From NCBI GenBank assembly GCA_050084985.1, contig JBITNC010000002.1:22072001-22136000 (forward strand): a stretch of DNA of 64,000 nucleotides. The letters are read 5' to 3'. The DNA comes from Nageia nagi (Eukaryota > Plantae > Pinophyta). This document shows positions 4,887 to 56,585 of this stretch, piece after piece (position 1 is the first letter of the stretch; each line of letters starts with the position of its first letter). Below the pieces are notes generated by a model. It worked only from the letters and a program-made list of their open reading frames with translations. It was not told where the DNA came from and did not search any database. Position numbers and translations under genes: made by a program.

Positions 4887-6239
4887 TAGTAGAAGCAACC
4901 ATTTTTGATATTTTTTTTTGAAATTGGTTGTGTGATGGCACGACTCCTCTATGTGTAGATCGCCCAAAGGAGAGGCATGGCCACTTCTACCTATCATATT
5001 CTCCATTTTGCACATTTCTTGCCTTCATTGTATTGCCTGAGACTGCATCTTGATAATGCAATTTATCAAATAATTCACAGATCCCTTTGTATATATATTT
5101 TGTGCATATCCTATAATCTTTGCATTGCATGACACTGCAAACTTGTTAAATCTCTTTGGTTTCTATTTTTTTATGCCAATCAATTGGAAATTCAAATAAT
5201 AAATTTGATTGTGTCTACCTAGTTGAACCCTCCTTGGTGGTACGTAATCACCACAAGGAGTGTGAACCCTCTTAGGGGCACATTGCCTCCCAAGGGGTCA
5301 CATACTTGGGGGATCTCCTACCCTTCTTCACTTTCTCTTGGGAAGGCCATGATCAAAATGTGGGCCATAGGTGTGGAAATTCTCCTCCAGATCATGATGC
5401 TTGTTCTCACCTTCGTTCTTGGTTATGTCCTACGTAGGCACAAATTCTTTTTTCTTCATGAAGCTAGTATGAATCAAGGAGACAAAATCTATTTTCCTTT
5501 TCATAGAGCATTTGTAATTCAAGGGTTTTGTAGCTTTCTTTTCTTCTCTCTGGTTAAATATCTTCAAGTTTTATTCACGCTAAATTGAAGGACATGCAAG
5601 ACTTGCCAATTTTTTATTCATTTATTTTTTCTTCCAATGCGTGACTCATATTGTATTTATTTAATAGGATGAGTCATTACATGTAGTGTAGACATCTTGA
5701 TCATGCCCCTTTGTCATGAAATCGATATGGTGGCATGTGATGGTTGTTGGTATAATGATGACAAACACTACAAAATTTGATTAAAAACTATATATATATA
5801 TTCTAGTGGCGGTTTCCTACATTTGACTTTATTAGTATGGGTGTCTCTTATTTTCCTCTTTATTGCTAGTTCTAATCTTTATCATGGTGGGAGAATATTT
5901 TTTTACAACCAAGTGGCATATATTTTCAACAAGGGACAACTTATTTTTCAAATGGGTCTTTAATTGACATGATGCCATATATATTTTTTTACCTTGTCCC
6001 ACATTACCACTTGACAATATCATATATTTTTTTAATGTTTTGACTATGCCTTAAATACATTTATTGAATTAGATGTTAACAACAATTATTTTCTTGTACT
6101 TCTTAATTTGGTATGATCAAAATTTTAAAAATTACTACACCCTTTAGTGGTATGGATGATGATGTGTAGTAATCCTAGTATATTACTTTTGGAATGCACA
6201 TTTATTTATTTTCATAAAGTTAAAATAGGGTATTTAATG

Positions 6240-35203: not shown

Positions 35204-36140
35204 CTAAATTGTGTTGTTAGATGTGAAATCTCTTGCAGCGCCCAGCACTTGTGCCTGCATTTCAGTTTCAAATAGTTTCAAAACTGGCTGAGGCATCCAC
35301 ATCAATATCTTAATTCCATCTCTGCCATTCATTGGATTCAGAAACAGGAATGAATTTACATGAAAGGCCACGTTCAATTTCATGGGACTCACATTCATTG
35401 CTTTTCCCAACCCAAAATCCACTCCCTCGAATCCCAACTTTCTCCAGTCACTCACCAAAAGATGCCGAGGACATATACACACATCCATCTTAACTCCACC
35501 CTGATGCCTGTTGAATTCCTGAAAGTCGATGAAGCTTCTCAGATACGAGTCATTTAACGACTGCTTTACATTCCTTATAATCTTGAAAACATGCAAAAGA
35601 GATGCGTCAAGCAGCTCTCGAACAGTAGCTAATGCACTTACTACTAGGGTAACATTGCCGTAGTATCCATCCGGCATGGGAGGGTTGAATGATCTGCTCA
35701 CGTCCACTGCAAACATTAAATTCACCTCCTCACTCTGAAACTTCAAGAGCTGTTGTTCTTGCTCTCCAACACAACACTGTCACCACTTCAAAACTAGACA
35801 CAGATTCTTCACCTTCTTCCACAAGACATTTCTTGACATGTTCTATGGTATTGGAATTTATAACAAGAGAAGATTGAACTAACTCGTCGTTGATTGAAAG
35901 TGACCGAACGCTAGCAGACGGTGCATTCTCTGATTCTATTTTAACACCATGAAACTCTAACTGTGGAGGGTCTCTGGGTTTGAGGAGTTCTCTCTGCCAC
36001 ATGGGTTGTACAGAGAGGATAGAAGCTCCTCTTGCTGTTTCTGCAAGGGCATTAAGGAACTGCACTGCTCCTCGTCCGTCCAATAGGCTGTGGTGGAAAC
36101 CCACTCCCACAACAAAGCTCTCGCAACTGAAACCAGTTAC
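35204..36140 (-). pseudogene. BAHD acyltransferase exon 2, frameshifted
   Basis: After acceptor cacag it reads VTGFSCESFVVGVGFHHSLLDGRG (HxxxD). A frame change at ~35735-35745 separates ARTTALEV from QSEEVNLMFAVD. PDGYYGN is present, and DFGLG replaces DFGWG. Confidence 0.85.
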
Positions 36141-36952
36141 CTGTGCTTCAAAATAACTACCGTTACAATAAATTGATAATGCTCTAAATTTAACAGATTA
36201 TCTAAATGAACTTAACTATCATGTATGTTGTCTTCATCCAACGATTACAGTTAATTATAGTACACATTTTGATTTGTACAGTAGTTTTCTTATTTCTTAA
36301 ATGAAGACAATGTTCATATAATTAATTCGTGGATAATATTTGTCAGACATAATAAATTGAAATTTTTATTGAAAATACCAAGTTCATAATAAAGGCAAAA
36401 GTTATAAACCTATGAGTTAAGGCATAGCAGATTTTTTTATGTTGAAAGAAGTCACACTTGCACTGCTATTTCACATACTGTCATAAATATTAAATGCACA
36501 CAACTCATAAACCATTTAACTCTAGCACATCTGCACACGATCTTAAGATGGTCTAAAGGTCATTGGAGTTAACTGTCATCTACTTTGTGTTTAATTAGTA
36601 GGGACCGTTGATTATCATACATAAATAATAGATTATTTTACAGAAATAATTTTGTATCAAATCATTAATGGTATCCATTAAAAGTGATTTTGATGAATGA
36701 TATAACAGTTAAGATATTGTATTGATAATCAATTATTTTTGTCAATGTGATAATCAACTATTTCTTTATGATAATAAACTAATTTTGTATAATAGTCAAC
36801 TAATTCCGTAAGATAATGAAGAGAGTCCCACAGTTTCAATTAAACACAACTTAAGCGACAGTTGACTATAACCAGGCATAGTAGTCCATGTATTCTTCTC
36901 TGAAGGTAAAAAGCTGTGGTGAATAGAGATAAAGTTGAATAGGAGTATTTAC

Positions 36953-37396
36953 CAGAATAACCAGATGAATGTCGCTGATATCTGTATGTGGAGGAAACTC
37001 AAACATGAGCTGTTGAAATGATGAATTGAGGTTGTCCATATCGCCAAGCACAGACAAGGTATCGAAGGTGGTGGCTTCAACGAAGAGAGCACCCTCGCCC
37101 GTGCGCTCCACTTGAAGTTTTCCATTGTGGGCATTTCTCAACCGTCCAGCCAAGGGATAATATTGCACCAACACCTTGGATAAAGCCTCCCGAATCACTT
37201 TTGCAGGGTCAGCAGCTAAAACATTTAGATCGGGCCGGCTTTTGTACACGAGCAATGTAGTGAACATAAATCTCAATGCTGGCTGATCATCGATGTTGGA
37301 CAGATAGAGGATGGAGTTGGGTGAAGGCAGGCAGGGACGCACTACCATTTTTTTCACCACCTTCACATATAAATCAGTTGACGAATGGTTCTCCAT
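36953..37396 (-). pseudogene. BAHD acyltransferase (Taxus taxoid acyltransferase-like clade), exon 1
   Basis: MENHSSTDLYVKVV...PCLPSPNSILYLSNIDD...ADPAKVIREALSKVLVQYYPLAGRLR...TGEGALFVEA (148 codons). The GTAAAT donor at 36952 sits at the conserved BAHD intron position. Confidence 0.85.
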
Positions 37397-38439
37397 ATGA
37401 AGTTCTCTGCAGAAGAATTTCAGAGCTCTCAATAGATAGTAGGAAAACCAAAGCTTGTATCGAAATTCGTGGGGCTTCTCATCACCTGTAAGTTTAACCG
37501 CGGAATAGAATAGAATCGTCTACCCAATGTAGTAGATTCCAAATTGGAGTTCATTGGCATGTTGATGGAGAGAAGCTTGAGTAACTATCCTACATAGGAC
37601 ATAAAAGCATCAAGGTTGTGCTTTGTTCTCCCCTCAAGGAATCAAAATTGAGCCCTTCTAAAAGGGCATCCAGCCGACCATAGAAAGCTTAAAATTAAAA
37701 TAATGGTACCTAAAATGAAAGGTTATTTTTTAAGAGATCAATAGGTGGAGCTTAAATGCCTTCACTCAAATTTTATATTGAAGGTTGGTTAAATTATATC
37801 AATCTCTTTAGGAGATCCAGTTGATCTATGGGATGGTGAGCCAATATAATAATATGCATATAACATGTATTTCACCTTAGAGATTGCTTCTACAATAGTT
37901 TAGGTTCTTTACCATCTTACCACATAGTTAGAGATAATAATTGAAAATACTTTTAATTGATAATAGTTTAAAATTTTAACTATTTAAAATTCTTATACTT
38001 GATAATTTCGCAAATCTCATTATTTTTATCTGAAATGTTAACTATATAGCAAATAAGAGGCTTAAGTCATAAAATATTGAAGAGGATAGTTCCCACAAGT
38101 AATTGTACCTTTTTTTTTTTTACTAGAGAGATCTTATGTCATTAAGGTTTATGTATATTCTTATTATTATCATCACCACCTTGTCTCAATCATATCTACA
38201 ACCAATTTCCCACAAAATCTTGCATTTACTAGCAATACCTCCTTTGGCAGGAGTTAACGACCCAATATAATGGCTTCATCCTTGGTAGAGGCTCCTACTT
38301 TGATAGGAGCTCTTCAAGAGAATGTCATATCACTAGGGAAAGAACCCAAATGTTATCTTGAGGTATTTTATAAGGTATTGATTCCAATCCTAATGTTACA
38401 ATTCATTTTCTTTAATAACTTTAGGTTGACTTGCCTATG

Positions 38440-41210
38440 AATTTATATTATTGATGTTATGAGTCCAATTTGTCGGACCCATCTTCAAAAAGAAAATAAA
38501 GTAGAATCTTCTTCATTAAATAGAGATGAATATTACCCAATTTTATAAGATCAAAGTCAACCCTCTATCATAAATTAAAAATAAAAAAAATACTAAATAA
38601 ATTAATATAGTTAGATTCTACATATAAATATCTTTTCCCAAAGATGTATAGAATATGAAAACCCAATTTAAAATGCAAAATTTATAGTTATTTTTGTGTA
38701 ATATTATTTTTCCTTCTATGTTCATGAATACGGTCTATAATAGGTAACCAAGTCCTACTAATTTCAATACCTTGGTATTTATTTATATTATTAGGGTTGA
38801 GTTTAATTTCAATAGCTTCTCTAATTCTTCATTCATGGAATTGTCACATCTAGTCAAGAATTCAACATTATCCATGAGTATATAGTGTTTAGTCTTATCC
38901 ACATTTTCAATAAGGGAAGATTTAATTATTATATTATTTTATAAATTTGCATAATGTTCTTTAACTCTTGCATGCATTGACCTACCTATTTCATTAATGT
39001 AATAAGTTCCATGTAAGTTCCACACACACATATTATCTTATATACATCTTTATGTTGCAAGCGTCCTACAAGGTCCTTCACATATTCTCTAATTTATTAA
39101 GAGGAATAAAAATTATTTTAATATGTTCTTTCATTAGTATATAGTTAAATGTTCACATATACCCTTGATATAGGGAAGTTGGGCTATCTCAATGCAAGAA
39201 TTAATAATATTATAGTCTTGTCTCTCATTAATTTTTCCTCTTTCTATCATATTCCACACATTTCTAATCTCCTTAATGGAGTAACTATTTCTTATTAAAG
39301 CTTTAGTTAAATGCATATTCTCCTTATGTATATGGTCATTATTAGAAATTCTAAGGGCTCTAGTCATAAGAATATTGAGAACCCCATCTTTTGAGCATGA
39401 TGATGATGAGATGAGGTATGCAAATATATGTTTGTATGTGTCTTTTTTATGTATACCTTATGCCCCATATCCCCATTATCCTTTTTATAAACTAGCACAT
39501 CAAGGAAAGGAAGCTAACCATTATCCTTTTTATAAACTAGTACATCAAGGAAAGGAAGCTTATCATCAATTGAATTAAGGTGGTTATGAAAATCCTCAAG
39601 TGAATATTTTCCATGTGACCAATTCATATTTATATCATCCATGTATCTATCCCACCATTATTGTTTTAAATGAAATGAATAAAGTTCATTGCTTTCAAAC
39701 CACTTCATATATAAGTTGGGACCAATGGGTGATAATGGAGAGCTCATTGCTACCCTATGCACTTGTTCATAGAAATCCTCTTGATAACTAAAAAATGTAG
39801 TTTATAGGCATATTTTAATCAATCATAATGTTTCACGTCTTATTAAGTTAGATATAACCTTTAATGTTTTATCTATAGGAATTTTTTCTATAAGGAAACA
39901 ACATCGAAACTAACCAAAATATCACCATCCTTAACTTTGTGATTCTTTATCTTGCTTACAAAATGTTCATAGTTATTAGTGTATGAAGATGGTTTACCTT
40001 ATAAGCATTTAAGTTTTTCTTTGGCTAAATATTTAGTTAACTCATATGTTGGAGAGTTAATGATTTCCACAATGGGCCTAATTGGAACTCCTTCTTTATG
40101 TATTTTTGGGGTCCCATATATCCTAGGTACAATTGATATTTTAGGTATTAATATTTTCTTGGTTTCCTCATATACAAATGAAACTATGATATATTTCTTT
40201 GCTTTATTAATTATTTTATTGAAGGGGTTTGTATTCAATTTCTTGTAGCATCTTGAAGAGATAAGATGACCCAACATTTTTGCATGGTAGTCATTAACAT
40301 CAATAACTAAAATTCCATTTCCTTTATTCAATTTAAGAATGATAATATCCTTTTTATTTTTCAATGCTCTTAAGGCAACATCTTCATGCTTGGAAATATT
40401 TTTCTTAGGTGGTTTTGCCTTCTTTAATACTCTTACACAAACTTGGAGAATATTTTCAGCCACAACACAAGGAAGGTATTTAATAGCTAACTATATACCA
40501 CAAATGAATTTCTCATAGGGAATTTATTTGGGAGTAATAGAAAAATTGAAACCTTTATTCAAAATATTAATAACATGATTACTTAAAATAAAACTAGAGA
40601 GATTGACAACACCTTTTACAATAGACGTATCAAAATTTATAGGCATGCATTGAAAATTATTAACCACTAAATAATTTATATGACTAAGAGAGGGAAAAGT
40701 AGAATGCATCACATAGGGTGATATATGTGTATTATAAGATGAAAAAGATACATCAATTTTAAAAGAGGAATAAGGAGATGAGATAAATAAACTATCTTGA
40801 CTATTATTGTTGCATGTATGATCTTTGTACTTAATGTCTTTAGGTTATTAGGGCATCTACTATTTAACAACATAGGAGGAATGGTACTTAACAAAATTGC
40901 ATGAGTGGTGTTATGTAGGTTAAGAAGCAAATCTTTACTACAACAAATCTTAATTATTGAGGGATGGGGTATTGTTAACATAATTTGTTAAAATATCAAT
41001 ATTAGGAGATAGATTGGCATGGTTTTTAATAGTTTTGAATTTGTTTACATGTATTTTGGTTCTATATATTTTCTCCCACTCTACTTTAGTTGATGAGTTC
41101 ATCTCTATGATATCCCATGTCTTTCTATCAACAATGTTAGTAATTTTAATGTGTAGTGAGTATCTTAAGATGTCATCTAGTTCTTTCCTTTTGTTATTGA
41201 TCTCAATATG
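38440..41210 (-). mobile_element. Penelope-like element with C-terminal GIY-YIG endonuclease (Dryad-like), degenerate, copy 1
   Basis: VVNLSSFIL...LNKGFNFSITPK; IIILKLNKGNG; PRIYGTPKIHKEGVPIRPIVE..NSPTYELTKYL; LVSFDV; RNSYS; LPYIKG; VYKI.C.C...YINEIGR...RVKEH. Confidence 0.88.
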
Positions 41211-44433: not shown

Positions 44434-47307
44434 ATGGGAGAATCTTTTTTACCCAAACACATTCTTGATGGTTCTAACTTTGGGATTTAGAAACCTCGAA
44501 TGAGAGTTGAATTGCACGCAAAAAAGCTTTGGAAAATAGTGAATGAGAACCTTGTACCTCCTATAGATGAGAAGACACTAGAGGATTATGATAAAAAAAA
44601 TGAGTTGGCAACCTCTATGATTTATCATGTAGTTTTAGATAATGTGCTTCTGATGATTTTCTCTTCAACCTTGATAAAGGAAGCTTGGGATAAGCTTAAG
44701 AAAATCTACCTTGATTCAAAAAATTTAAGAAGGTTTACCATTCTCTAAAAGTTGCTTCAATCTCATCAAAGAAAATATGAAAATGTTGCTATCTACTTGA
44801 ACAAAATCATTGACCTAAGGATCCAACTTGTTGCTTATAGGTGCAATTAGATCAATGAGGAGTTCATGGTATTCATCATTCTTTAAAGCCTTTTTTCAAA
44901 GTTTAAAAACTTTGTAATAGCTATGAAAATAAGGCTTGATGAAGAAGAAGATGTTTTATCCCTCGAGAACCTTTATAGGTACCTTTTGAAGCATGAGAAA
45001 ACCTTTAACAATAAGGTGTTGATTTCTTCTTCTAAAGATAATAACATTACTTTTGGAAAAACCAAAATTGCTTTCAAGAAGAAGTTCAACCATCAAAAGA
45101 AATATTATCTTTTTTTCTCCAAAAAGTTTGAGAAAAGAGGTAATGGCAACAATAGGAACAACAACAACAACAACAACAAGAACAACAGCAAAAATAACCA
45201 CTTTAAGCAAAAATATGAAAAAGGCAAAGTAAACAATCCTTATATTAAGAAAAAATTTGATAATAATTGTAACTTTTATGGCTTCTAAGGTCACAAAGAA
45301 GTTGATTGCTACAAAAAGAAAAAAATAAATAAATAAAGGCAATGGATATGTAAAGAACTACAAAGGAAAGAAAAATATTTAAGTTGATTTTGTTGTGCCA
45401 CTCTACTCCTTGTATCGCTCTTTTTCATCTAAATGGATTGTTAATTTTGGTTGCACTAATCACCTATACTTTGAAAAGAAAAAATTTTAAAACTTTCACA
45501 AGTATAGAAAAGATGCAGTTGTGATAGGTAATAACTCTACCCTTAAATTCCAAAGAATTGGGAGTGTACTAATTCATAAAAAGGTTCTTAAAAATGTTTT
45601 CTATATTTCTAAGTTAAGGATGAACCTTCTTTTCATGATCTAAGTTTTTAGAAAAGGGTATTTTTTTGAATTTGACTCTCAATCCTAATGCATTAAGAAA
45701 GGACTTACCACTTTGGTTAAAAGATCTATGAAAGATAACTTCTACATTATGGATCAAGTTTTATCAAAGATGTGTCTTGCAACAAGTGTGTGTTCTAAAG
45801 ACAATATTTGGCATCAAAATTTAGGGCACCTTAACCATAAGAGTATTCAATTCATGAAAGACCAAGAACTTGTAGAAGGTTTGCCTTCAATTTCTTCTTT
45901 GGTTGGTCTATGTGAGAAGTGCATTCTTAGCAAGATGCATAGATAAAAGTTTGAAAAAGATAAGGCAACAAGAGCATATCAACCTCTTCAACTTGTGCAT
46001 TCAGATTTGATAGGTCCATTTCAGATTAAGTCACTTGGAGGAGCATCTTACATCTTGACCTTCATTAATGAATTTAGTAAAATGACCTTTGGGTATTTAC
46101 TTAAGCACAAAGATCAAACCTTTGAGAGTTTTAAGGTTTTTAAATCCTTTATTGATAATCAAACTAACCTTAAAATTAAGATGTTAAGATCAAATAATAG
46201 GAAAGAATATTACAAAAATAAGTTTAATGACTATTATGCTAAGTATGGAATTAAGAGGCAATTTACAATTCTTTACACTCCTCAGTAGAATGGTGTTATC
46301 GAAAGAAAAAATAGAATAATTATGGAGATGGCTAGATGCATGTTGTATAATTTTCCTAGTTTCTTATGGGGTAAAGCTATGAGTAATGCTACTTACATCT
46401 TGAATAGGTGTCCCATAAAATCCATTCAAAGTAAAACTCCTTTTGAGACATGGCCAGGAAGAAAACCTAACATTTCACATCTTAGAGTGTTTGGTTGTGA
46501 AGCATTCTCCAATATTATTTTTGAGAAAAGGAAGAAGCTTAATAAAAAAGCTAAAAAATGCATCTTTATGGGTTATGAAAATTAGCATAGAGGCTACAAG
46601 CTCTTCTCTCCATTCTACCAATCCATTTCTATTACAAGCCAAGAAGTTATTTGGTTAAGACATCTTTTGAAAGGAATTGAGTATGAGCAAGGTCGCTCAT
46701 ATTTGATTTCTTTAGATAATCAATCAACTATTTCTTTAGCTAAGAATATTATGTTCTATCAAAGAATAAAACATGTAGAAAGCCATACCCATTCTATCAG
46801 AAAGAAGGTTCTTTATGGCATCATACATCTAGAGTATTGTCCATCCACCTTGAACTTCGCTAATTTGTTCACTAAAACCCTCTTAAAAGTTCAGTTCTGT
46901 AAGTTTAGGGATGCTATTAAGTTGGTGAAGTTGGCCTTAAAAGGGATTGATGTTTAAAATCTTATGTTGAATTCATATTTGTGATGATAACTTCATCCCT
47001 AAGAGGATTTTGTGTTGTATAGTTTTGATTTTGTTGTACACCTTCATGGTAAGTTTGCTCTATGTGAGGAACTTGTTGTACAAATTTTTTAAAACCAAAA
47101 AAATGGAAAATATAGAACTATTCAATTATCCATGTGTGAGGATATTTTATGTGTCTTTTAGCATTGTTCAATTATCCATATATGAAGAACTCATATGTGC
47201 ATGCTCTATTTTGTAATGATAATCAATACATGTTTTATATATGGTAGGTAACTATGAGTTTTTAGCATGGAATCTTTGTGATGATTTATAGTGCACCATT
47301 TATGGCT
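44434..47307 (+). mobile_element. Ty1/copia element A: gag, protease, integrase, RT deleted, RNaseH tail, 3' region
   Basis: Gag (EAWDKLKKIY); WHQNLGHLN...CEKC; HSDLIGP...LTFINEFS; MEMARCML; KCIFMGY. At ~46630 it jumps directly to RNaseH (IWLRHLL, DNQSTI, KHVE, ANLFTK). Confidence 0.88.
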
Positions 47308-50121
47308 TAAAAAAATTTTAGGGTTTAAAAAATTTTAATATATCATGGGCAGCAGCATAAGACAAACACACAAAAAGAAATCTAGAGTTTCATAGAGCAA
47401 ACGGGTCTTCCATTAACAAAAGAAGATTACAATTTTTTCTTAAGCTTGCTCAAAACATGTTTCGTGGCTATACCACTCATTAGTTGAGCTGAAAAAAGCT
47501 TATTTGATACATGAAACTCTTACAATAAGATAATAAGTAGAAAAACTCAATCCTTGACTTCAAACCCTAATTAGGGTTTCTTGGAAAGGAGGAGAGTTAT
47601 TAATGTCTAATTAATTAGTTAATTAACTAATTAGGTAAATCATTGTAAAGGACTAACTGAACTAGTTAAGTAGCTCATAGATTTTTCAAAATTTAAATAC
47701 CTAAGTATAATAAAATTTGAAAATTTAAACATTGAGCTACGTAAATAATTAAATAGCCAAAGGCTAATTTGATTGCTTACTTAACTAATTAATTAGCTAT
47801 CTAGAAATGAATCTGCTTCTCATCAAATAAGTGCCAAGTTTCCTCGGATTATGCCAATAGGTACGTGGTCATGGAATATGTTGCAGTGTAAGAACTTGCT
47901 GGCAAAGCTAAAAAAGCTTAGGGTTTAGGGTGCCCCCTAGATTCAAACTTTTGGCAAAAGAACTGATATCAAGTTTAAAAACCAAGGGGGTCCTCTTACT
48001 CTTTCGTATCGGTACACAAATCTGGTTGAGTAGCACTAATCTATCCGAGAGGTGAACCTGATTGAAATAAAGAAGCAAAAACTTTCTAGGATATCCTCTT
48101 GCCCGAAGTATCTGATAAAAAGAAGTATAGAGCCTTAAGAAATTTGCAGTGTATTCTCTGAGAAGATACCTCTTTAATTCATTAATGATAAAAGCCTTCT
48201 TCTGGTGTACAAGATGCCATGAGCTATATGGAATATATTGATAAGCATTCAATGGTTTCTAAAAATAGCTAGAAGATAATCGGCCAGTAACATTGAAGTT
48301 TGCTCCTTTAAAGAAGCAAATATCCATAATATGAATAGAAGAGGATGAAACGACAGGAGTAATGATAATTTCAGAATAGAAACTCTAATAAGCTACAAAT
48401 AACTAATGTAAAGCCTCTTAAAAACCTAACCAAATTCCAAAAACATCATCAATATATCTTCTATAGTAGATCAGAGAAGAAGTGTCACATACTTGTGCAA
48501 GTTGGTTCTCTAGGTGGCATAAGAACAAACATGCATACACAACTGTAAAGTTACTCCCCATGGTAGTGCCCCTGATCTGCTTGTAGAAGGTTCCATCAAA
48601 CTCAAGAAAATGGTGTGTGAGAACCAGTTTAATAAGAGCTAAAATAAAATCAATTAGCATAGTGTCAAGAGCATGAATGGAAACAACATCTGTAACCATA
48701 GATCTGAGAACAAAAAGACTAGCAGAAATGGGAATGCTAGGGTAAAGAGATTCTACATCGAAGGTAAAAAGATAACAATCATGTGGAAGATTGATCTCAT
48801 TAATATCCCTAAGCAAGGTGACAAAGTTAGGAAGATGGTGTTTCTATTCAAGGAGAATGGGGAGAAGAAGGCAATGGAGGAATTTGGAGATAGGTTCAAG
48901 CATATAACTTGAATAAGAACAAATAGGCCTACTAATAAGAATTGGTTTATGCAATTTAGGAAGTAAGTAAAAAGCACAAGCCCTAGTTTTAGCAGCATGA
49001 TATTTTAACAAAAAGTTCTTAACAGGTTTAAGGAAAGAAAACTTTTCAATGAGAAAAGTGAGCTTACTCCAAATAAGGCTCTAAGGTACTTCAGAGACTT
49101 GAAGATAAACTGCAGGATCATATAATTGTCTGCATCCTTCTTATCGATACCATAGAATATCCAAAATAATAGTACCCAGGTTCTTATCAGCAAGTTTGAT
49201 AATAATGGAGTCATCATTCCTGAGAGTCTTCAATACCTTCTACAACCGCAAAGGGAGAGGTGGTTGAAGAGTGAAAGAGCAGCAATTAATTTGTTTCATC
49301 AAAATTCGTTCACACTCCTGGATGATATCCTCAAGGTGGAGATTAGGTTTAGGAGGATGCCAAAAAGGGTTGGGGGTCCTAAAATAAGGAGGAAAGACAC
49401 CTAAGAGAGTTAGAAGTGTAGGTGAATTGGAGGGATCTGGAGTCATTTCAAGATCAGGATCAAGATCAGGTCCAAAGAAGGCTTGAAGCTGAAGATGCCT
49501 AGTAAAAGAATGAAATTCTGCAAGAATACTAGAGAGGGCCATTGGTGGTGGTTGAGGAATGTATTTGATACCCAAAATAAGTGATTTTCTTTCATCATAA
49601 CTCAACCATATGGAAGAAAGATTATGAATAACAAGGTTGCTGATTCGATGATCGATCTCAGAGGGAGTTTTACGAGAAAAGAAAATTAGGGCAAAGAATG
49701 CACGATCAATGGGCACCCCCCAGTAGCTTATGTGAAAGCAGGGAAAGGGATGTTGTTGCATGGGATCTGAGCATTAGGTCTCCCTTGACTTCATCCCATA
49801 CTACAACCACAGCTTTGACCATGTCCTCTCCCATATGTCAAAACATTCCCTATGCTTGTGTTTAAGCCTCCATGCTAACCAACAGATTGGACATTGATCC
49901 TGGGTGCTTGGTTTGATTTTGGCACCAAGGGAGATGGCCCAGAGACATTACGTGTGGAGTTTTGAGGCATGGCCCTAGAAGGTGTCCCATTTTTTGGAAT
50001 AGATTACTTGGGAGAGGAAGACTGTTGCTACTACTATTGATTTTTAGGAGGGCCACCCTTTCTCTTTTTCTATTTTCGATTCTTTTTAGAGCTAGTTGGA
50101 GCTGGTTTAGCAATAGTAGTA
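47308..50121 (-). mobile_element. Endonuclease-less Penelope-like element with an upstream zinc-knuckle ORF remnant
   Basis: PLE RT motifs VIHNLS..LGIKYIPQP, IIIKLADKNLG, FYLLPKLHK..RPICS, TFDVESLYPSIP, GTTMGSN, YRRYIDD, KPLNAYQYIPYSSWH, LRARGYP. The reading ends WHNPRKLGTYLMRSRF at ~47800 with no GIY-YIG. It interrupts the 3' region of copia A. Confidence 0.82.
47448..47489 (-). ncRNA. Minimal type I hammerhead ribozyme (one core substitution)
   Basis: Minus strand: GCUCAA-CUAAUGA-GUGG UAUAG CCAC-GAA-ACAUGU-U-UUGAGC. It has a 6-bp stem I, a CUGAUGA core with G>A, stem II, GAAA, a palindromic stem III, and a GUU cleavage triplet. Confidence 0.8.
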
Positions 50122-50992
50122 AGCCATTCAATGAGTTCATCTATCCTTGTTGATATGAATATGTTGCACCTAATTGATATTATTATTTGAGCTACTTATG
50201 ACTTGCAAGTTATTTTGAGATTGCAGGTTACTTACCTTAGGAATGCAAGCTCTTGGAGACTCTTCATGAATTCCAATTGGATGACTACTTCATGTACATT
50301 GAAATCTATTGTGGTTAATGATTATATTTGGTAAAGTAGTAAGTCTCAAACTAGATCTTTCTTACTTCACAAATATGTAAAAAGTTCTCATCTCTGTTGT
50401 ATCTGTTTGGAGGAGAATTCTCTTACTTTCTCTTTTTATTCTCTCTTATTTACTCTATCCCAATATTGCATTAAGGGAGAGTGTTGGAATGTATAATGCA
50501 TTATTATAAAGGTTATGTAATAATATTATATGTAATTTCACTAATACTTAAGGGTATCATTTGATACCTTAAGTATTTAAGTGAATATGATAATGTAACT
50601 TGTCGTACACTCCATGTCATGAGCATGACCCTTGGGTAAAAGGATGTGCATGTCATGTCTTTGTACATTGGATAAGAGGGTGATCCAAAGAAGGATTTTG
50701 TTCTATAAATATAGGGCATCCTCTTTGAGATTACATACCAATTATGGAGTAAAGTTATGCTATAAGATAGAGCATAGGAGTTGAGATTAGGTCGATTGTA
50801 AGAGTTCATATTTGTTAAAAAGAGAGATATAGTTAGTGGATGTACTCCTAGTTGAAGGAACCACTTACATCTTGTGTTTTCTTTGTGAGATTGCTTTGTG
50901 AGTTTGTTAAGATGTGTATTTAGAGCTTTCATATGATCTTGGTGGTTTAAGATTATTCATGTTATAGTTCAATTCTCTCATGGTTATCCAAC
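50122..50992 (+). mobile_element. Copia A 3' region, PPT and 3' LTR (LTR 50482-50992)
   Basis: PPT ttaagggagag precedes tgttggaatg...tatccaac. It is homologous to the reverse complement of 51142-52010. Confidence 0.85.
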
Positions 50993-51141: not shown

Positions 51142-53355
51142 TTTTGAAAGGAATAAGACTAAATGACTAAATCCTTAATTGCCCAAGATCACATGAAAGC
51201 TCTCTCAAATTCCTTTAGCATTAATAACACAAACTCAAAGTAGCATTAGAACAAGATGAAACCAATATAATTTTTTTTGCCTAACCATGGGAGTACATCT
51301 ACTAATCTAAGATCTTATTCCCAAATAGCACTCTCTTATAAAGCACTTTCTCACTTCTCCTAAAACCTAGACAAGAGCATAACTTTACTACAAAATTAAG
51401 TGAGTAATATCAAAGAAAAAGTCCTTCGTTTATAGGCTAAAATCTTCCCTTGAACCAAATTATTAACCATTGTACAATGTCATGACATGGATCACCCTTT
51501 TACCCAAGGAGCATACTCATGAGATGGAATGTAGGATAAGTTACATTATCATATTTAATAAATACTTAAGGTATCTAGGGATACCCTTAAGTTTTAAATG
51601 AATTACATGAAGAGAATTTACAATAATATATTATACATTTCAACACTCCCTCTTAATGCAATATTGAGTAGAGTGAATAGGAGATAAGAAAGAGAGAGTA
51701 CGAGAGAGTTCTCCTCCATAAAGATACAAATAAAGATGAAAATATTTACATATTTTAGAAATAAACAAGACTTTATATTGAGGCTCACTACTTTACCATT
51801 TGACAAAATGGTTTACAATACAATCATTAACCATAAGTACAAAGTAGTCATTCAACTACAAGTTGATATGAGCCTCCATGAACTTAGTTATTCAAAGTAG
51901 GTAACCTACACTAACAAGAAGAAACCTACAAGCTACAAGCAACTCATAAATAATATTAATCAAATGCATCATATAAACATTCATATCAACATAAGATAAA
52001 TGCATCCATTAATGCCATCCATAAACTAATCAATGGTGTACTATAATTCATCATGAAAATGCTAATCCAATATTCATAGTCACTTGTATGAAAAATTTGT
52101 TGATCAACATCAAAAATAGATCATAAACACATACAAGTTCCTCACATATGGATAACTAAACAATTTCAAAAATATATATATTTATTCCTCACATATGGAT
52201 AACTAGAACAATGCTAGTAGAAGCCATCATATGCTAAAAAATATACAACTAGTTTCGCACACATAGTGAACTAACCACGAAGGTGTATATAAAAATATCA
52301 ACACTATATAGCCAAAAAATCCTCCTAAGGATGAAGTTTTCATCACATACATGAATTCAACAAGAATTCAACCTTTACTCTCCCTTCAGGGCAACTTCAC
52401 CAACCCAATAGATTTCTTAAGCTTGCAAAACTAAGTTTCAAGAAGGGGTTTGGTGAAAAAATTAGTAGAGTTTAGGAGTGATGGGTAATACTGCAATTGT
52501 AAGATACCATCTAGAACCTTCTCTCTAATAGAATATTCTTGGATTTCAACATATTTTATTTTCTAATGAAATACATGGTCCTTTTACAAGGAAATAGTCA
52601 ATTAATTATCTAATTAAAAAATTTGAGATGGGTGAGCTTGCTCATACCTAAGTTTTTTAAGAAGATGCCTAAACCAAATAGCTTCTTAAGCTATGATTGA
52701 CATGGCTCGGTATTTTGCCTCTATGGTGGAGAGAGAAGTAGTAGGTTACTTCTTGGAAGCTCAAAAGATAACACTTGAACCAACGTTAAATGTATAAGAA
52801 AAGGTTGATTTATTATCATCTCTATCTCCCTTGTAGTCAGAATTTGAAGATCCTAAGAGAATAAATGAGGGTAATTTGGAATACTTGAGAGCAAGATCTT
52901 TTATGCCTGCAATATACCTCAAGATTTGTTTAACAACATTGAGATGCTTAACATATAGGTTTTGCATAAACCATGCCATAAGATTTATTGCAAAGGCAAT
53001 ACTTAGCCTGGAGATAGTCAAATAAAGAAGACTGCCAATTAGTTGCTTATAAGATGTAGCATCTATCAACTGAGAATCAGAGCTAAGAGTTAGAGTGATT
53101 CCATGAGATACAAAGATCACAATAGGTTTGCACTCAATTTTAAAAAAATTTAGTATGTCTAAAATATACTTGAATTCAGTAAGGTAAGTATAATCCTTCC
53201 ATTGGTACACTTTCATACCAAAGTAGTAGTGCAAGAGACCAAGGTCAATCATTTCAAATGTTGCCTTAAGTTTGGATATGCACTCTTGGATGATTTTTTC
53301 ATTATTTTTTATGATCAAAATATCATCCATAAAGAGAAGAATCGATACCAAGTAT
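51142..53355 (-). mobile_element. Ty1/copia element B, 3' part (C-terminal RT, RNaseH, 3' region, PPT, 3' LTR ~51142-51645)
   Basis: ORF 52761-53351: LLFMDDILI, FEMIDLGLLHYYFG, YKQLIGSLLYL. PPT ttaagagggag precedes tgttgaaatg. Same family as copia A. Confidence 0.88.
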
Positions 53356-54050: not shown

Positions 54051-56585
54051 GCATATTAAGATCAATAACAAAAGGAAAGAACTAGATTACATCTTGAGAT
54101 ACTCACTACACATTAAAATTACTAACATTGTTGATAGAAAGACATGGGATATCATAGAGATGAACTCGTTAGGTAAAGTAGAGTGGAAGAAAATATCTAG
54201 AACCCAGAGACATGTAAACAAATTTAAAACTCTAAAAAACCATGCTAATCTATCTCCTAATACTGATATTTTAACAAATTATATTAACAATACCCCATCC
54301 CTCTGTATTAAGATTTGTTATAGTAAAGATTTTGTTAAGTAGCATTTCTCCTATGTTGTAAATTAGTACATTCCCTAATAACCTAGAGACATTAATGTAC
54401 AAAGATCATACATGCAACAATAATAATCAAGATAGTTTATCTATCTCATCTCCTTGTTCCTCTTTTATAATTGATTTATCTTCTTCATCTTATAATACAC
54501 ATATATCACCCTATGTGATGCACTCTACTTCTCCCACTCTTAGTCATATAAATGATTTAGTGGTTAATATTACAATGCATGCCTATAAATTTTGATACAT
54601 CTATTGTCAAAGGTGTTGTCAATCTCACTAGTTTTGTTTTTAAGTAATCATGCTATAAAAAGTTTGAATAAAAGTCTCAATTTTGCTATCACTCCTAAAC
54701 AAATTCCCTATGAGAAATTCATTTGTGGTATAAAGTTAGCTATTAAATACCTTCTATATACTATGGCTAAAAATATTCTCCAATACTGTATAAGAGTATT
54801 AAAGAAGGAAAAACCACCCAAGAAAAATATTTCCAAGCATGAAGAGGTTGCCTTAAGAGAATTGAAAAATGAAAAGGATATTGTCATTATTAAATAAAAT
54901 AAAATAAATGTAACTATATTTATTTATGTTAATGGCTACCATGCAAAAATGTTGGATCATCTTATGTATTCAAGATGCTACAAGAAATTGAACACAAACC
55001 CCTTCAATAAAATAGTCAATAAAGTAAAGAAATCTATCATAGTTTAATTTGTATATGAGGAAAGTAATAAAATATTAATAACTAAAATATTATTATAGAT
55101 AGGATATATGGGACCCCAAAAATACATAAAGGAGTTCTAATTAGGTCCATTGTGGAAACCATTGACTCTCCAACATATGAGTTAGCTAAATATTTAGCCA
55201 AATAAAACTTAAATTCTTATAAGGTAAACCATCATCATACACTAATAACTATGAATATTTTGTAAGGAAGATAAATAATCACAAAGTTAAGGATGGTGAT
55301 ATTTTAGTTAGTTTTGATGTTGTTTCCTTATAGAAAAAATCCCTACAGATAAAGCATTAAAGGTTATATCTAACTTAGTAAGATGTGAAACATTATGATT
55401 GATTAAAATATGCCTATAAACTACATTTTTTAGTTATCAAGGGGATTTTTATGAACAAGAGCATAGGGTAGCAATGGCCTCTCCATTATCACCTATTGTT
55501 TCCAACTTATATATGAAGTGGTTTAAAAGCAAGGCTCTTGATTCATTTCCTTTAAAAATAAAATGGTGGGATAAATACATGGATGACATAAATATGAATT
55601 GGTCACATGGAAAATATTCACTTGAGGATTTTGATAACCACCTTAATTCAATTCATGAGAAGATTCCTTTCCTTAATGTGCTAGTTTATAAAAAGAATAA
55701 TGGCTAGCTTCATTTCCTTGATGTGGTAATTTTTAAAAAGGATAATGGGGAGATGGGGCATGAGGTATACATAAAAAAGACACATTCAAATATATATTTG
55801 CATGCCTCATATCATCATCATTATGCTCAAAAGATAAGGGTTCTCAATATTCTTATGACTAGAGCCCTTAAAATTTTTGGTAATGAGCATATACATAAGG
55901 AGAAGATGCATTTAACTAAAGCACTAATGAGAAATGGTTACTCCATTAAAGAGATTAGAAATGTATGAAATATGATAGAAAGAGGAAAAATTAATGAGAT
56001 ACAAGACTATAATAATACTAATTCTTGAATTGAGATTCAAATCTATGAAGGACCTTATAGGACCCTTGCAACATAAATATGTATATAAGATAATATGTGA
56101 GTGTGTAACTTATTGCATTAGTGAAACAGGTAGGTTAATACATGCAAGAGTTAAAGAACATTATGCAAATTTATAATATAATAAAATAATTAAGTTCTCC
56201 TTTGCTAAAAATGTGGATAAGATAGTTAAATATTATATACTCATGGGCAAGGTTGAAGTCTTGACTAGATGTGACAAATTCCATGAACAAAGGATTAGAA
56301 AAGCTATTAAAACTAAACTTAACCCTAATAATATCAATGAATACTAAGGTTCTAAAATTATTAGGACTTGGTTACCTGTTATATACCTTATTCATGAACA
56401 TAGAAGGAAAAATAATATGACACAAAAATAGCTATAAATTTTATATTTTAAATCATTTTTTCATGTTTTATACATTGTTGGAAAGATATTTTATGTAGAA
56501 TTTAACTATATTAATTTATTTAGTTTTTATTTATTAATTTATTTTTATGATATAAGGTTGACTTATTTTTATTCTTATCGACATA
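54051..56585 (+). mobile_element. Penelope-like element with GIY-YIG (Dryad-like), degenerate, copy 2
   Basis: MASPLSPIVSNLYM, KYMDD, YIKKTHSNIYLHASYHH, RNGYS, VYKIICEC..CISETGRLIHARVKEH. It is the reverse-complement paralog of 38540-41210. Confidence 0.88.

Follow-up and report, generated by a model that had tools for sequence, protein, structure and literature searches.

A probable endonuclease-less Penelope-like element, old and inactive, inserted into a copia retrotransposon of Nageia nagi

Among mobile elements, Penelope-like elements (PLEs) without an endonuclease (EN) are the nearest relatives of telomerase. For Selaginella moellendorffii, endonuclease-deficient PLEs were reportedly described by Gladyshev and Arkhipova in 2007. 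Selaginella EN-less elements that carry canonical type-I hammerheads are already published (Cervera & de la Pena, 2014, PMC4209133). The Athena/Terminon elements of bdelloid rotifers and Coprina of fungi and other organisms are likewise EN-less and combine a hammerhead near the 3´ end with reverse-complement telomeric repeats at the 3´ end (PMC6431247, PMC8557442), and canonical hammerheads also occur in Chlamys PLE-X of Selaginella and Chara, a group of EN-less PLEs in the green lineage (Craig et al., 2021, PMC8557442). For conifers, Pinus taeda and Picea abies have entries for EN(-) PLEs in Table 1 of a 2022 review (PMC9033089), attributed there to Lin et al., 2016, and a 2025 review names only Selaginella for plant telomere-associated PLEs (PMC12477314). 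Judging from such reviews, EN-less PLEs are rarely documented in plants, essentially in Selaginella and in the pine and spruce table entry. Here we describe an element of this kind in a 64,000-nucleotide stretch of Nageia nagi DNA (assembly GCA_050084985.1, contig JBITNC010000002.1, positions 22,072,001 to 22,136,000, forward strand), which is referred to as the window and in which position 1 is the first letter.

The minus-strand insertion at 47306-50124 is in all likelihood one old, inactive copy of an EN-less PLE, probably 5´-truncated, that belongs to a streptophyte lineage for which priming on telomeres or DNA breaks is inferred. The Selaginella elements are its closest described counterparts. 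They encode, as the family in the window does, a protein of about 580-620 aa that consists of reverse transcriptase (RT) only and has the same C-terminal tail; their hammerhead has the same 6-bp helix I, 4-bp helix II and short palindromic helix III (PMC4209133); and both have plant-type CCCTAAA units at the 3´ end, which for Selaginella is reported by secondary citation. In contrast to them, the copy in the window comes from a gymnosperm, is internal in a copia element rather than telomeric, is dead and ends with a single telomeric unit. The Pinus and Picea EN(-) PLEs, which are likened here by their listing and not by sequence (PMC9033089), reside in conifer genomes that also hold EN-bearing (EN+) PLEs called Dryads, as the window does. 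The closest named proteins of the RT in the window are from Cryptomeria (56-63% identical) and not from Pinaceae. Because the 2022 review lists the Pinus and Picea elements and the Selaginella hammerhead elements are published, the novelty is limited: the element is a dead addition to a known plant EN-less PLE lineage, a solid but modest one. The first-pass annotation of the window, made from the letters alone, had announced a little-described seed-plant lineage; an EN-less lineage is present in gymnosperms, as it said, and its novelty was overstated. The parts of the element that encode protein are as follows.

47306-50124, minus strand: the whole PLE insertion, 2819 nt, whose flanks are contiguous in two kinds of empty site.

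47797-49716, minus strand: RT open reading frame (ORF) with N-terminal PLE motifs, RT core, thumb and a C-terminal tail of the CW..P..L..LV type, placed by tblastn and alignment with P0001, Cryptomeria P0175, Ginkgo P0002 and Selaginella P0004.

49794-50003, minus strand: putative C-terminal tail of ORF1, inferred only; basic, rich in Ser, Pro and Asn, broken by stops, read in frame 1.

The RT is read in a single frame. Positions 49710-47800 align by tblastn with full-length homologues without a frameshift, and ten premature in-frame stops, mostly TAG or TAA, interrupt the frame. A GTG at 49714-49716 corresponds to the first codon of P0001, the closest protein (604 aa), which is 73-75% identical in amino acids to the RT in the window. 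The named kin are Cryptomeria LOC131042973, Ginkgo Gb_11119 and Selaginella XP_024523476 (41-44%), and Cryptomeria P0175 is 56% identical. The Pfam RVT_1 match is weak; features of a PLE-type RT, the N-terminal IHNLS..L...E..L..GI.YIP and the C-terminal CW.NP..L...L tail, are both present. A search with the RT gave 7207 matches at E<=1e-3, which include GIY-YIG-bearing RTs of frog and pseudoscorpion genomes, and a scan of viral contigs gave no relatives.

The natural stop at 47797-47799 comes after ...WHNPRKLGTYLMRSRFISR, which aligns with the extreme C-terminus of Cryptomeria LOC131042973 (...WRNPRKLGSFLLRSRFLSRG; P0175 ends in ...RSRFLSRG), and equivalent C-terminal tails are found in other relatives, Selaginella included. 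In the EN+ PLE P0013, the corresponding segment ...PPNLRNLLVSA runs on into a zinc-finger linker and a GIY-YIG domain. Since its stop aligns with the tails of intact homologues of about 600 aa, the ORF in the window ends exactly where EN-bearing PLEs continue. No C-terminal GIY-YIG was found past the thumb and linker, where the ORF closes at the natural stop of the family, and none was found at the N-terminus, where the ORF starts at the codon homologous to the P0001 start and the 400 nt upstream have no Pfam match. The GIY-YIG segments of eight EN+ PLEs gave no meaningful tblastn match in 46800-50700. Pfam detected no GIY-YIG domain in P0001-P0005, and PF01541 occurs in one of the 120 best homologues, P0245, which lies outside the clade of the RT in the window. 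A single C-x-C was seen, the C-G-C of GQSCGCSMG, which belongs to the putative ORF1 tail and not to the RT protein; no search was aimed at the CxC/CxCX1-8C signature. Because the stop coincides with the C-termini of intact homologues and the clade has no GIY-YIG-bearing members, the element is read as a naturally EN-less PLE and not as a truncated Dryad. As judged from these homologues, the absence of the endonuclease is a property of the family and not a loss in one copy. The first-pass annotation had recognised a minus-strand PLE-type RT that stops at about 47800 right after the thumb and has no GIY-YIG at either end, and had called the element EN-minus; these calls hold for the element and its flanks as searched, and the closest proteins provide no sign of an EN-bearing family.

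The phylogeny of the RT leads to the same assignment. Two trees agree, a 177-row FastTree and a 52-row IQ-TREE (LG+C20 PMSF, SH-aLRT, quick search); the named members of the clade in them are from Selaginella, Ginkgo, Cryptomeria and Closterium, and rows for Athena, Coprina, Neptune, Naiad and TERT are not among them. The RT in the window pairs with P0001 (support 100), the pair nests among Cryptomeria and Ginkgo proteins (98), with Selaginella as the sister of this group (99-100), and Closterium and metagenome sequences lie outside the Selaginella-gymnosperm group (96-99). The clade around the RT comprises 39 rows in the IQ-TREE or 144 rows in the FastTree, and not one of its members bears a GIY-YIG domain; all GIY-YIG rows (frog, pseudoscorpion and others) lie apart from it. 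The branching order, with Closterium before Selaginella and Selaginella before gymnosperms, follows that of the hosts, which suggests, on the basis of these trees, that the lineage was vertically inherited in streptophytes, in which it is widespread according to the sequence searches. Intact proteins of the lineage are present in the Cryptomeria and Ginkgo annotations, where they are labelled only 'uncharacterized'. Intact members have an RT-only protein of about 600-625 aa with a separate ORF1 in front. For comparison at the DNA level, 65 related loci were taken from a metagenome scan; the RTs that they encode are 36-53% identical in amino acids to the RT in the window.

In these relatives, a separate ORF1 of 450-930 aa precedes the RT, with 25-60 nt between its end and the RT start. 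Pfam assigns no domain to it, and the ORF1 of 14 relatives showed no CCHC pattern. The putative ORF1 tail of the copy in the window ends 75 nt before the RT start. Only about 400 nt of the element lie upstream of the RT start, and the 5´ end is clean; since relatives have a full ORF1, the copy is probably 5´-truncated. The same 400 nt show no similarity to the ORF1 of relatives or to the Ginkgo N-terminal extension. A zinc-knuckle ORF had been claimed for this region in the first-pass annotation, and this claim fails. The two candidate knuckles, QKMGHLLGPC and YGRGHGQSC, are in different frames and have no Pfam zf-CCHC match, and their spacings (S-x2-F-x4-H-x4-C and Y-x3-H-x3-C) do not fit CX2CX4HX4C. 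By description, Chlamys PLE-X differ from the element in the window: one Chara type has an upstream ORF with zf-CCHC, which the element in the window lacks, and Chlamys PLE-X derive from PLEs with an N-terminal EN, of which a CxC motif and an extension at the N-terminus are retained (PMC8557442), whereas the RT in the window starts at the usual start of its family.

The limits of the insertion were set by comparison with empty sites of the host copia.

46641-47305, plus strand: left flank in the host copia, its 3´ part, past the pol remnant 46322-46957; placed by alignment with the empty sites.

50125-50761, plus strand: right flank in the host copia, placed in the same way.

51376-52687, minus strand: inverted paralogous copia copy, an empty site, 71-73% identical to both flanks.

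In the inverted copy, 46641-47303 of the left flank runs directly into 50125-50761 of the right flank. The empty site is also present in three contigs of X1, a public air-metagenome run rich in the host copia, in which 47300 is followed by 50136 with 26 copia bases between them. The ORFs of the flanks and of the paralogous copy contain SH3-like integrase and RVT_2 domains, which identify the host as copia; a search with the copia RT ORF matched metagenome sequences only. When the filled and empty forms were compared, no target-site duplication of at least 3 nt was found; about four target bases (ATGG/CCAT) are lost at the junction, and an 8-nt difference also lies nearby. Junctions are resolved only to about 4 nt because the comparison copies have diverged. 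Terminal repeats (pLTR) are absent from the PLE copy, in which the only self-match is a weak, AT-rich inverted one within the 3´ untranslated region (UTR). The insertion inside a copia was thus read correctly from the letters alone, with limits (47308-50121) that are right within 3 nt.

Two observations concern the host copia itself. In 46322-46957 (plus strand), an ORF for the SH3-like integrase part is followed within about 100 nt by an ORF that resembles, by eye and without a Pfam match, the C-terminal end of copia RNase H; the RT part of this copia copy may have been deleted. In X1, the summed contig depth is 10^4-10^5 for the host copia (46900-47300 and 50140-50500) and 1-17 for the PLE, so the copia is extremely abundant there and the PLE low-copy. 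Pollen of the source species or of a close one is probably contained in the run.

The 3´ part of the element contains the following features.

47306-47796, minus strand: AT-rich 3´ UTR, recognised by base composition.

47448-47489, minus strand: type-I hammerhead, the sole match of the covariance model R1 and the sole descriptor match.

47306-47326, minus strand: 3´ terminus AAACCCTAAAATTTTTTTAAG, with a single plant telomere unit, in reverse complement, 10 nt away from the junction.

47562-47579, minus strand: perfect 18-nt palindrome of telomere units, AAACCCTAATTAGGGTTT, about 75 nt 5´ of the hammerhead.

47917-47931, minus strand: ACCCTAAACCCTAAG, two telomere-like units that code for T-L-N-P-K, inside the RT ORF near its C-terminus.

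The hammerhead lies about 310 nt 3´ of the RT stop and about 140 nt before the end of the element. It reads GCUCAA-CUAAUGA-GUGG-UAUAG-CCAC-GAAA-CAUG-UU-UUGAGC, with a helix I of 6 bp (GCUCAA/UUGAGC), a helix II of 4 bp (GUGG/CCAC), the GAAA, a palindromic 4-nt helix III (CAUG) and the cleavage triplet GUU. Rfam detected no hammerhead at gathering thresholds in the whole window or at E<=10 in 47200-47900; a descriptor and a family-derived model were used because Rfam misses the form with a short helix III. Model R1, built from the hammerheads of 12 relatives with the window left out, has a single match in the 64 kb when both strands are searched (47450-47487, 19.2 bits, E about 8e-4). A relaxed descriptor, for which 0.017 matches are expected in a random 64 kb, gives the same single match, and the fold exceeds those of shuffled sequences in stability (z = -2.9). 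Of the 65 related loci, 22 carry this motif on the sense strand according to the descriptor, with 24 motifs in all; in 20 of these loci it lies 200-1200 nt 3´ of the RT. In one further locus, L024, it is on the antisense strand only. The architecture and position of the hammerhead in the window match those of the relatives, among which compensatory changes are visible.

The core of the hammerhead reads CUAAUGA instead of CUGAUGA, a change of G5 to A. G5 is an essential residue of the hammerhead core, as established by biochemistry. Because this residue is mutated, the ribozyme is presumably inactive, as the ORF is.

The 3´ UTR has a GC content of 27.5%, compared with 36.9% in the RT ORF. The element ends in ...UUUUUUAAACCCUAAAAUUUUUUUAAG, after which copia resumes, and its terminal telomere-like unit is a single AAACCCTAAAA. 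The sense-strand hexamer CCCTAA occurs four times in the last 630 nt, where about 0.2 would be expected from the rate in the window itself, an enrichment of about 20-fold; the four are spread over the terminal unit, the palindrome and the ORF-embedded ACCCTAAACCCTAAG. The relative L064 has a comparable palindrome, (TTTAGGG)3(CCCTAAA)3 at 2628-2672, about 190 nt past the RT, and the telomere-unit palindrome may be a conserved hairpin module. The TLNP motif is kept in proteins of Cryptomeria, Selaginella and others, and the T/F-L-N-P-K of L001, a 51%-identical relative, is encoded by the same telomere-like codons (2150-2163); such codons were seen in three DNA sequences. The AT-rich 3´ UTR and the downstream hammerhead that had been noticed in the first-pass annotation are confirmed by these data; the telomere motif that it saw on the sense strand at the 3´ junction is present as well, and is weak evidence since a single CCCTAAA is not rare here.

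Telomeric ends are seen directly in relatives of the element, in metagenome contigs (ERZ10344xx assemblies). In L051, a degenerate hammerhead is followed after 160 nt by (CCCTAAA)4 at the contig end (1950-1986), and L033 has (CCCTAAA)9 at its contig end (6230-6302). In L011, a sibling of L033, two units stand at the same nucleotide and are followed by the ORF1 of the next element (6100-6160). In these three loci, the element ends in CCCTAAA units 160-440 nt past the hammerhead. L035 (1-110) has the array first and then a 5´-truncated element, and L003 (3165-3200) ends in AAAACCCTAAACCTAAAC directly before the next ORF1. Telomere-attached EN-less PLEs therefore exist in organisms with plant-type telomeres, for which these contigs are direct evidence, and relatives of the clade do show the (CCCTAAA)n junctions, together with head-to-tail chains. 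Of the two conditions that would have refuted the first-pass annotation, neither is borne out by these relatives and the trees. In Athena and Coprina, 5´-truncated copies and telomere-joined head-to-tail chains are described, and their counterparts here are L011, L033 and L035; this comparison is made by description. Terminons are giant elements (tens of kb) with multiple ORFs and an Athena RT at the end, whereas the insertion in the window is 2.8 kb and a full unit in L007 is about 5.1 kb. Separately, irregular CCCTAACCCTAA clusters of a 6-mer type, which may be a coding minisatellite or a telomere-like spacer, occur in some relatives at several places 5´ of the RT, in or near the ORF1 region (L010, L026, L027, L036 and L040).

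A mechanism can be proposed from these features. The RNA of the family would end in C-rich, telomere-complementary units that could anneal to a G-rich 3´ overhang, and the RT would prime on a free DNA end, normally the chromosome terminus, rather than on a nick made by an endonuclease of its own. Such priming is suggested by analogy with Athena and Coprina and by the telomeric junctions of the relatives. For the copy in the window, priming or capture would most likely have occurred at an internal double-strand break in the copia, and the 5´ side of the cDNA would have been joined by end-joining. Mutation of the C-to-T type may later have produced the ten stops and the change of G5 to A. The hammerhead would presumably process read-through or chain transcripts or fold the 3´ region. 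The insertion fits capture at a break because it has no target duplication and few target bases are lost. Because the copy is dead, internal and has one telomeric unit, it shows nothing on telomere priming by itself. The telomere- or break-priming capture proposed in the first-pass annotation is thus upheld in part: the junction and the relatives fit it, and the copy alone proves nothing. What the copy offers is a cleanly delimited internal insertion, with an empty site, without target duplication and with its 3´ end in a telomere-like unit, which is the type of event expected if EN-less elements prime on broken DNA ends. Since it is dead, its value is that of a marker for genome surveys and not of a functional element.

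Several points weigh against reading 47306-50124 as a 5´-truncated copy captured through telomere or break priming. The copy is internal and not at a telomere; its one telomeric unit is not terminal and is followed by TTTTTTTAAG; and CCCTAAA is fairly common in the window, with 21 occurrences against 12 expected. In Terminons, the repeats stand immediately 3´ of the hammerhead (PMC6431247), compared with about 140 nt in the window and 140-440 nt in the clade. The telomeric junctions are known from distant metagenome relatives (38-53% identical in amino acids) and not from the source genome or the same family. The 100% pairing of the relatives' hammerheads is not independent evidence, because the set was chosen with a pairing descriptor. 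The empty sites share no more than 71-73% identity or belong to different copies of the copia, so that a duplication of 1-2 nt (GC) is possible, and the 5´ truncation is derived solely from ORF1 in relatives.

The alternative that survives best, although it is unlikely, accepts the EN-less PLE and attributes its telomere-like sequences (the terminal unit, the palindrome and ACCCTAAACCCTAA in the ORF) to chance or hitch-hiking; insertion would then have proceeded by ordinary target-primed reverse transcription from a nick supplied in trans, for example by the endonuclease of a Dryad or a LINE, or would have used a random break at which telomere complementarity played no part. The window-wide excess of CCCTAAA and the single, non-terminal unit at the 3´ end agree with it, the conservation of TLNP as protein could alone explain the motif in the ORF, and EN+ PLEs coexist in the genome. 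It is opposed by the lack of a target-site duplication with loss of target bases, by the roughly 20-fold enrichment of the sense-strand hexamer in the last 630 nt, and by the place of the terminal unit, which relative to the hammerhead is the position where relatives join telomere arrays.

A second alternative is an ordinary EN+ conifer PLE of the Dryad type that lost its C-terminal GIY-YIG by 3´ deletion or truncation. Dead transposon copies commonly carry internal deletions, and EN+ remnants resembling Dryads lie in the same window.

38940-40620 (approximate; RT core 39412-39822), minus strand: Dryad-like EN+ PLE remnant 1, decayed.

55330-56170 (RT core 55399-55923), plus strand: Dryad-like EN+ PLE remnant 2, decayed.

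These two remnants are inverted to each other, and their RT cores are 81% identical. In the trees they join pseudoscorpion EN+ elements, a grouping that fits the published arthropod affinity of conifer Dryads, and weak GIY-YIG-like matches (E 0.01-0.07) lie just 3´ of each RT. Dryads thus share with the element in the window the PLE RT, the host group and residence in the window itself, and differ from it in the C-terminal GIY-YIG and the arthropod grouping. With the two remnants the EN-less RT shares about 25% identity, and with EN+ PLEs only about 25-29%; its clade is well supported and distinct from theirs, which agrees with the early remark that it is clearly different from both. Its stop is the natural C-terminus of many intact homologues of about 600 aa, and a family-specific 3´ UTR with a hammerhead follows directly after the stop. 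Loss of a GIY-YIG domain by this copy is accordingly very improbable.

That there was no insertion at all, and the locus is an assembly chimera or a recombination product of a copia and a PLE locus, has a negligible probability. In its favour, diverged repeats are densely nested in the region and include inverted copies of the copia. Against it, the two junctions map to within a few bases of one another when the empty-site copies are compared, and the element has the complete 3´ anatomy of its family and a clean 5´ end.

The reading as an EN-less copy captured at a break can be extended, which we do only tentatively, as the extended form seems rather doubtful. There may be one ancient, vertically inherited EN-less PLE lineage of streptophytes (Closterium, Selaginella, Ginkgo and cupressophyte conifers) that is still active in conifers and carries extra telomere modules, namely the palindrome and the ORF-embedded ACCCTAAACCCTAA that codes for TLNPK, as sites for telomerase seeding or capping or for alternative priming. 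If so, the family would extend chromosome ends and heal internal breaks in the giant genomes of gymnosperms.

Elsewhere in the window, two ORFs on the minus strand (35204-35746 and 36866-37432) match a BAHD acyltransferase (Pfam Transferase family) in its N-terminal and its C-terminal part and are probably two exons or a broken gene. The exon at 36866-37432, which of itself marks the host as a gymnosperm of cupressophyte-like kind, has its nearest named proteins in Taxus chinensis (61%) and in Cryptomeria japonica (57%); Pinus (49%) and angiosperms (about 43%) come after these.

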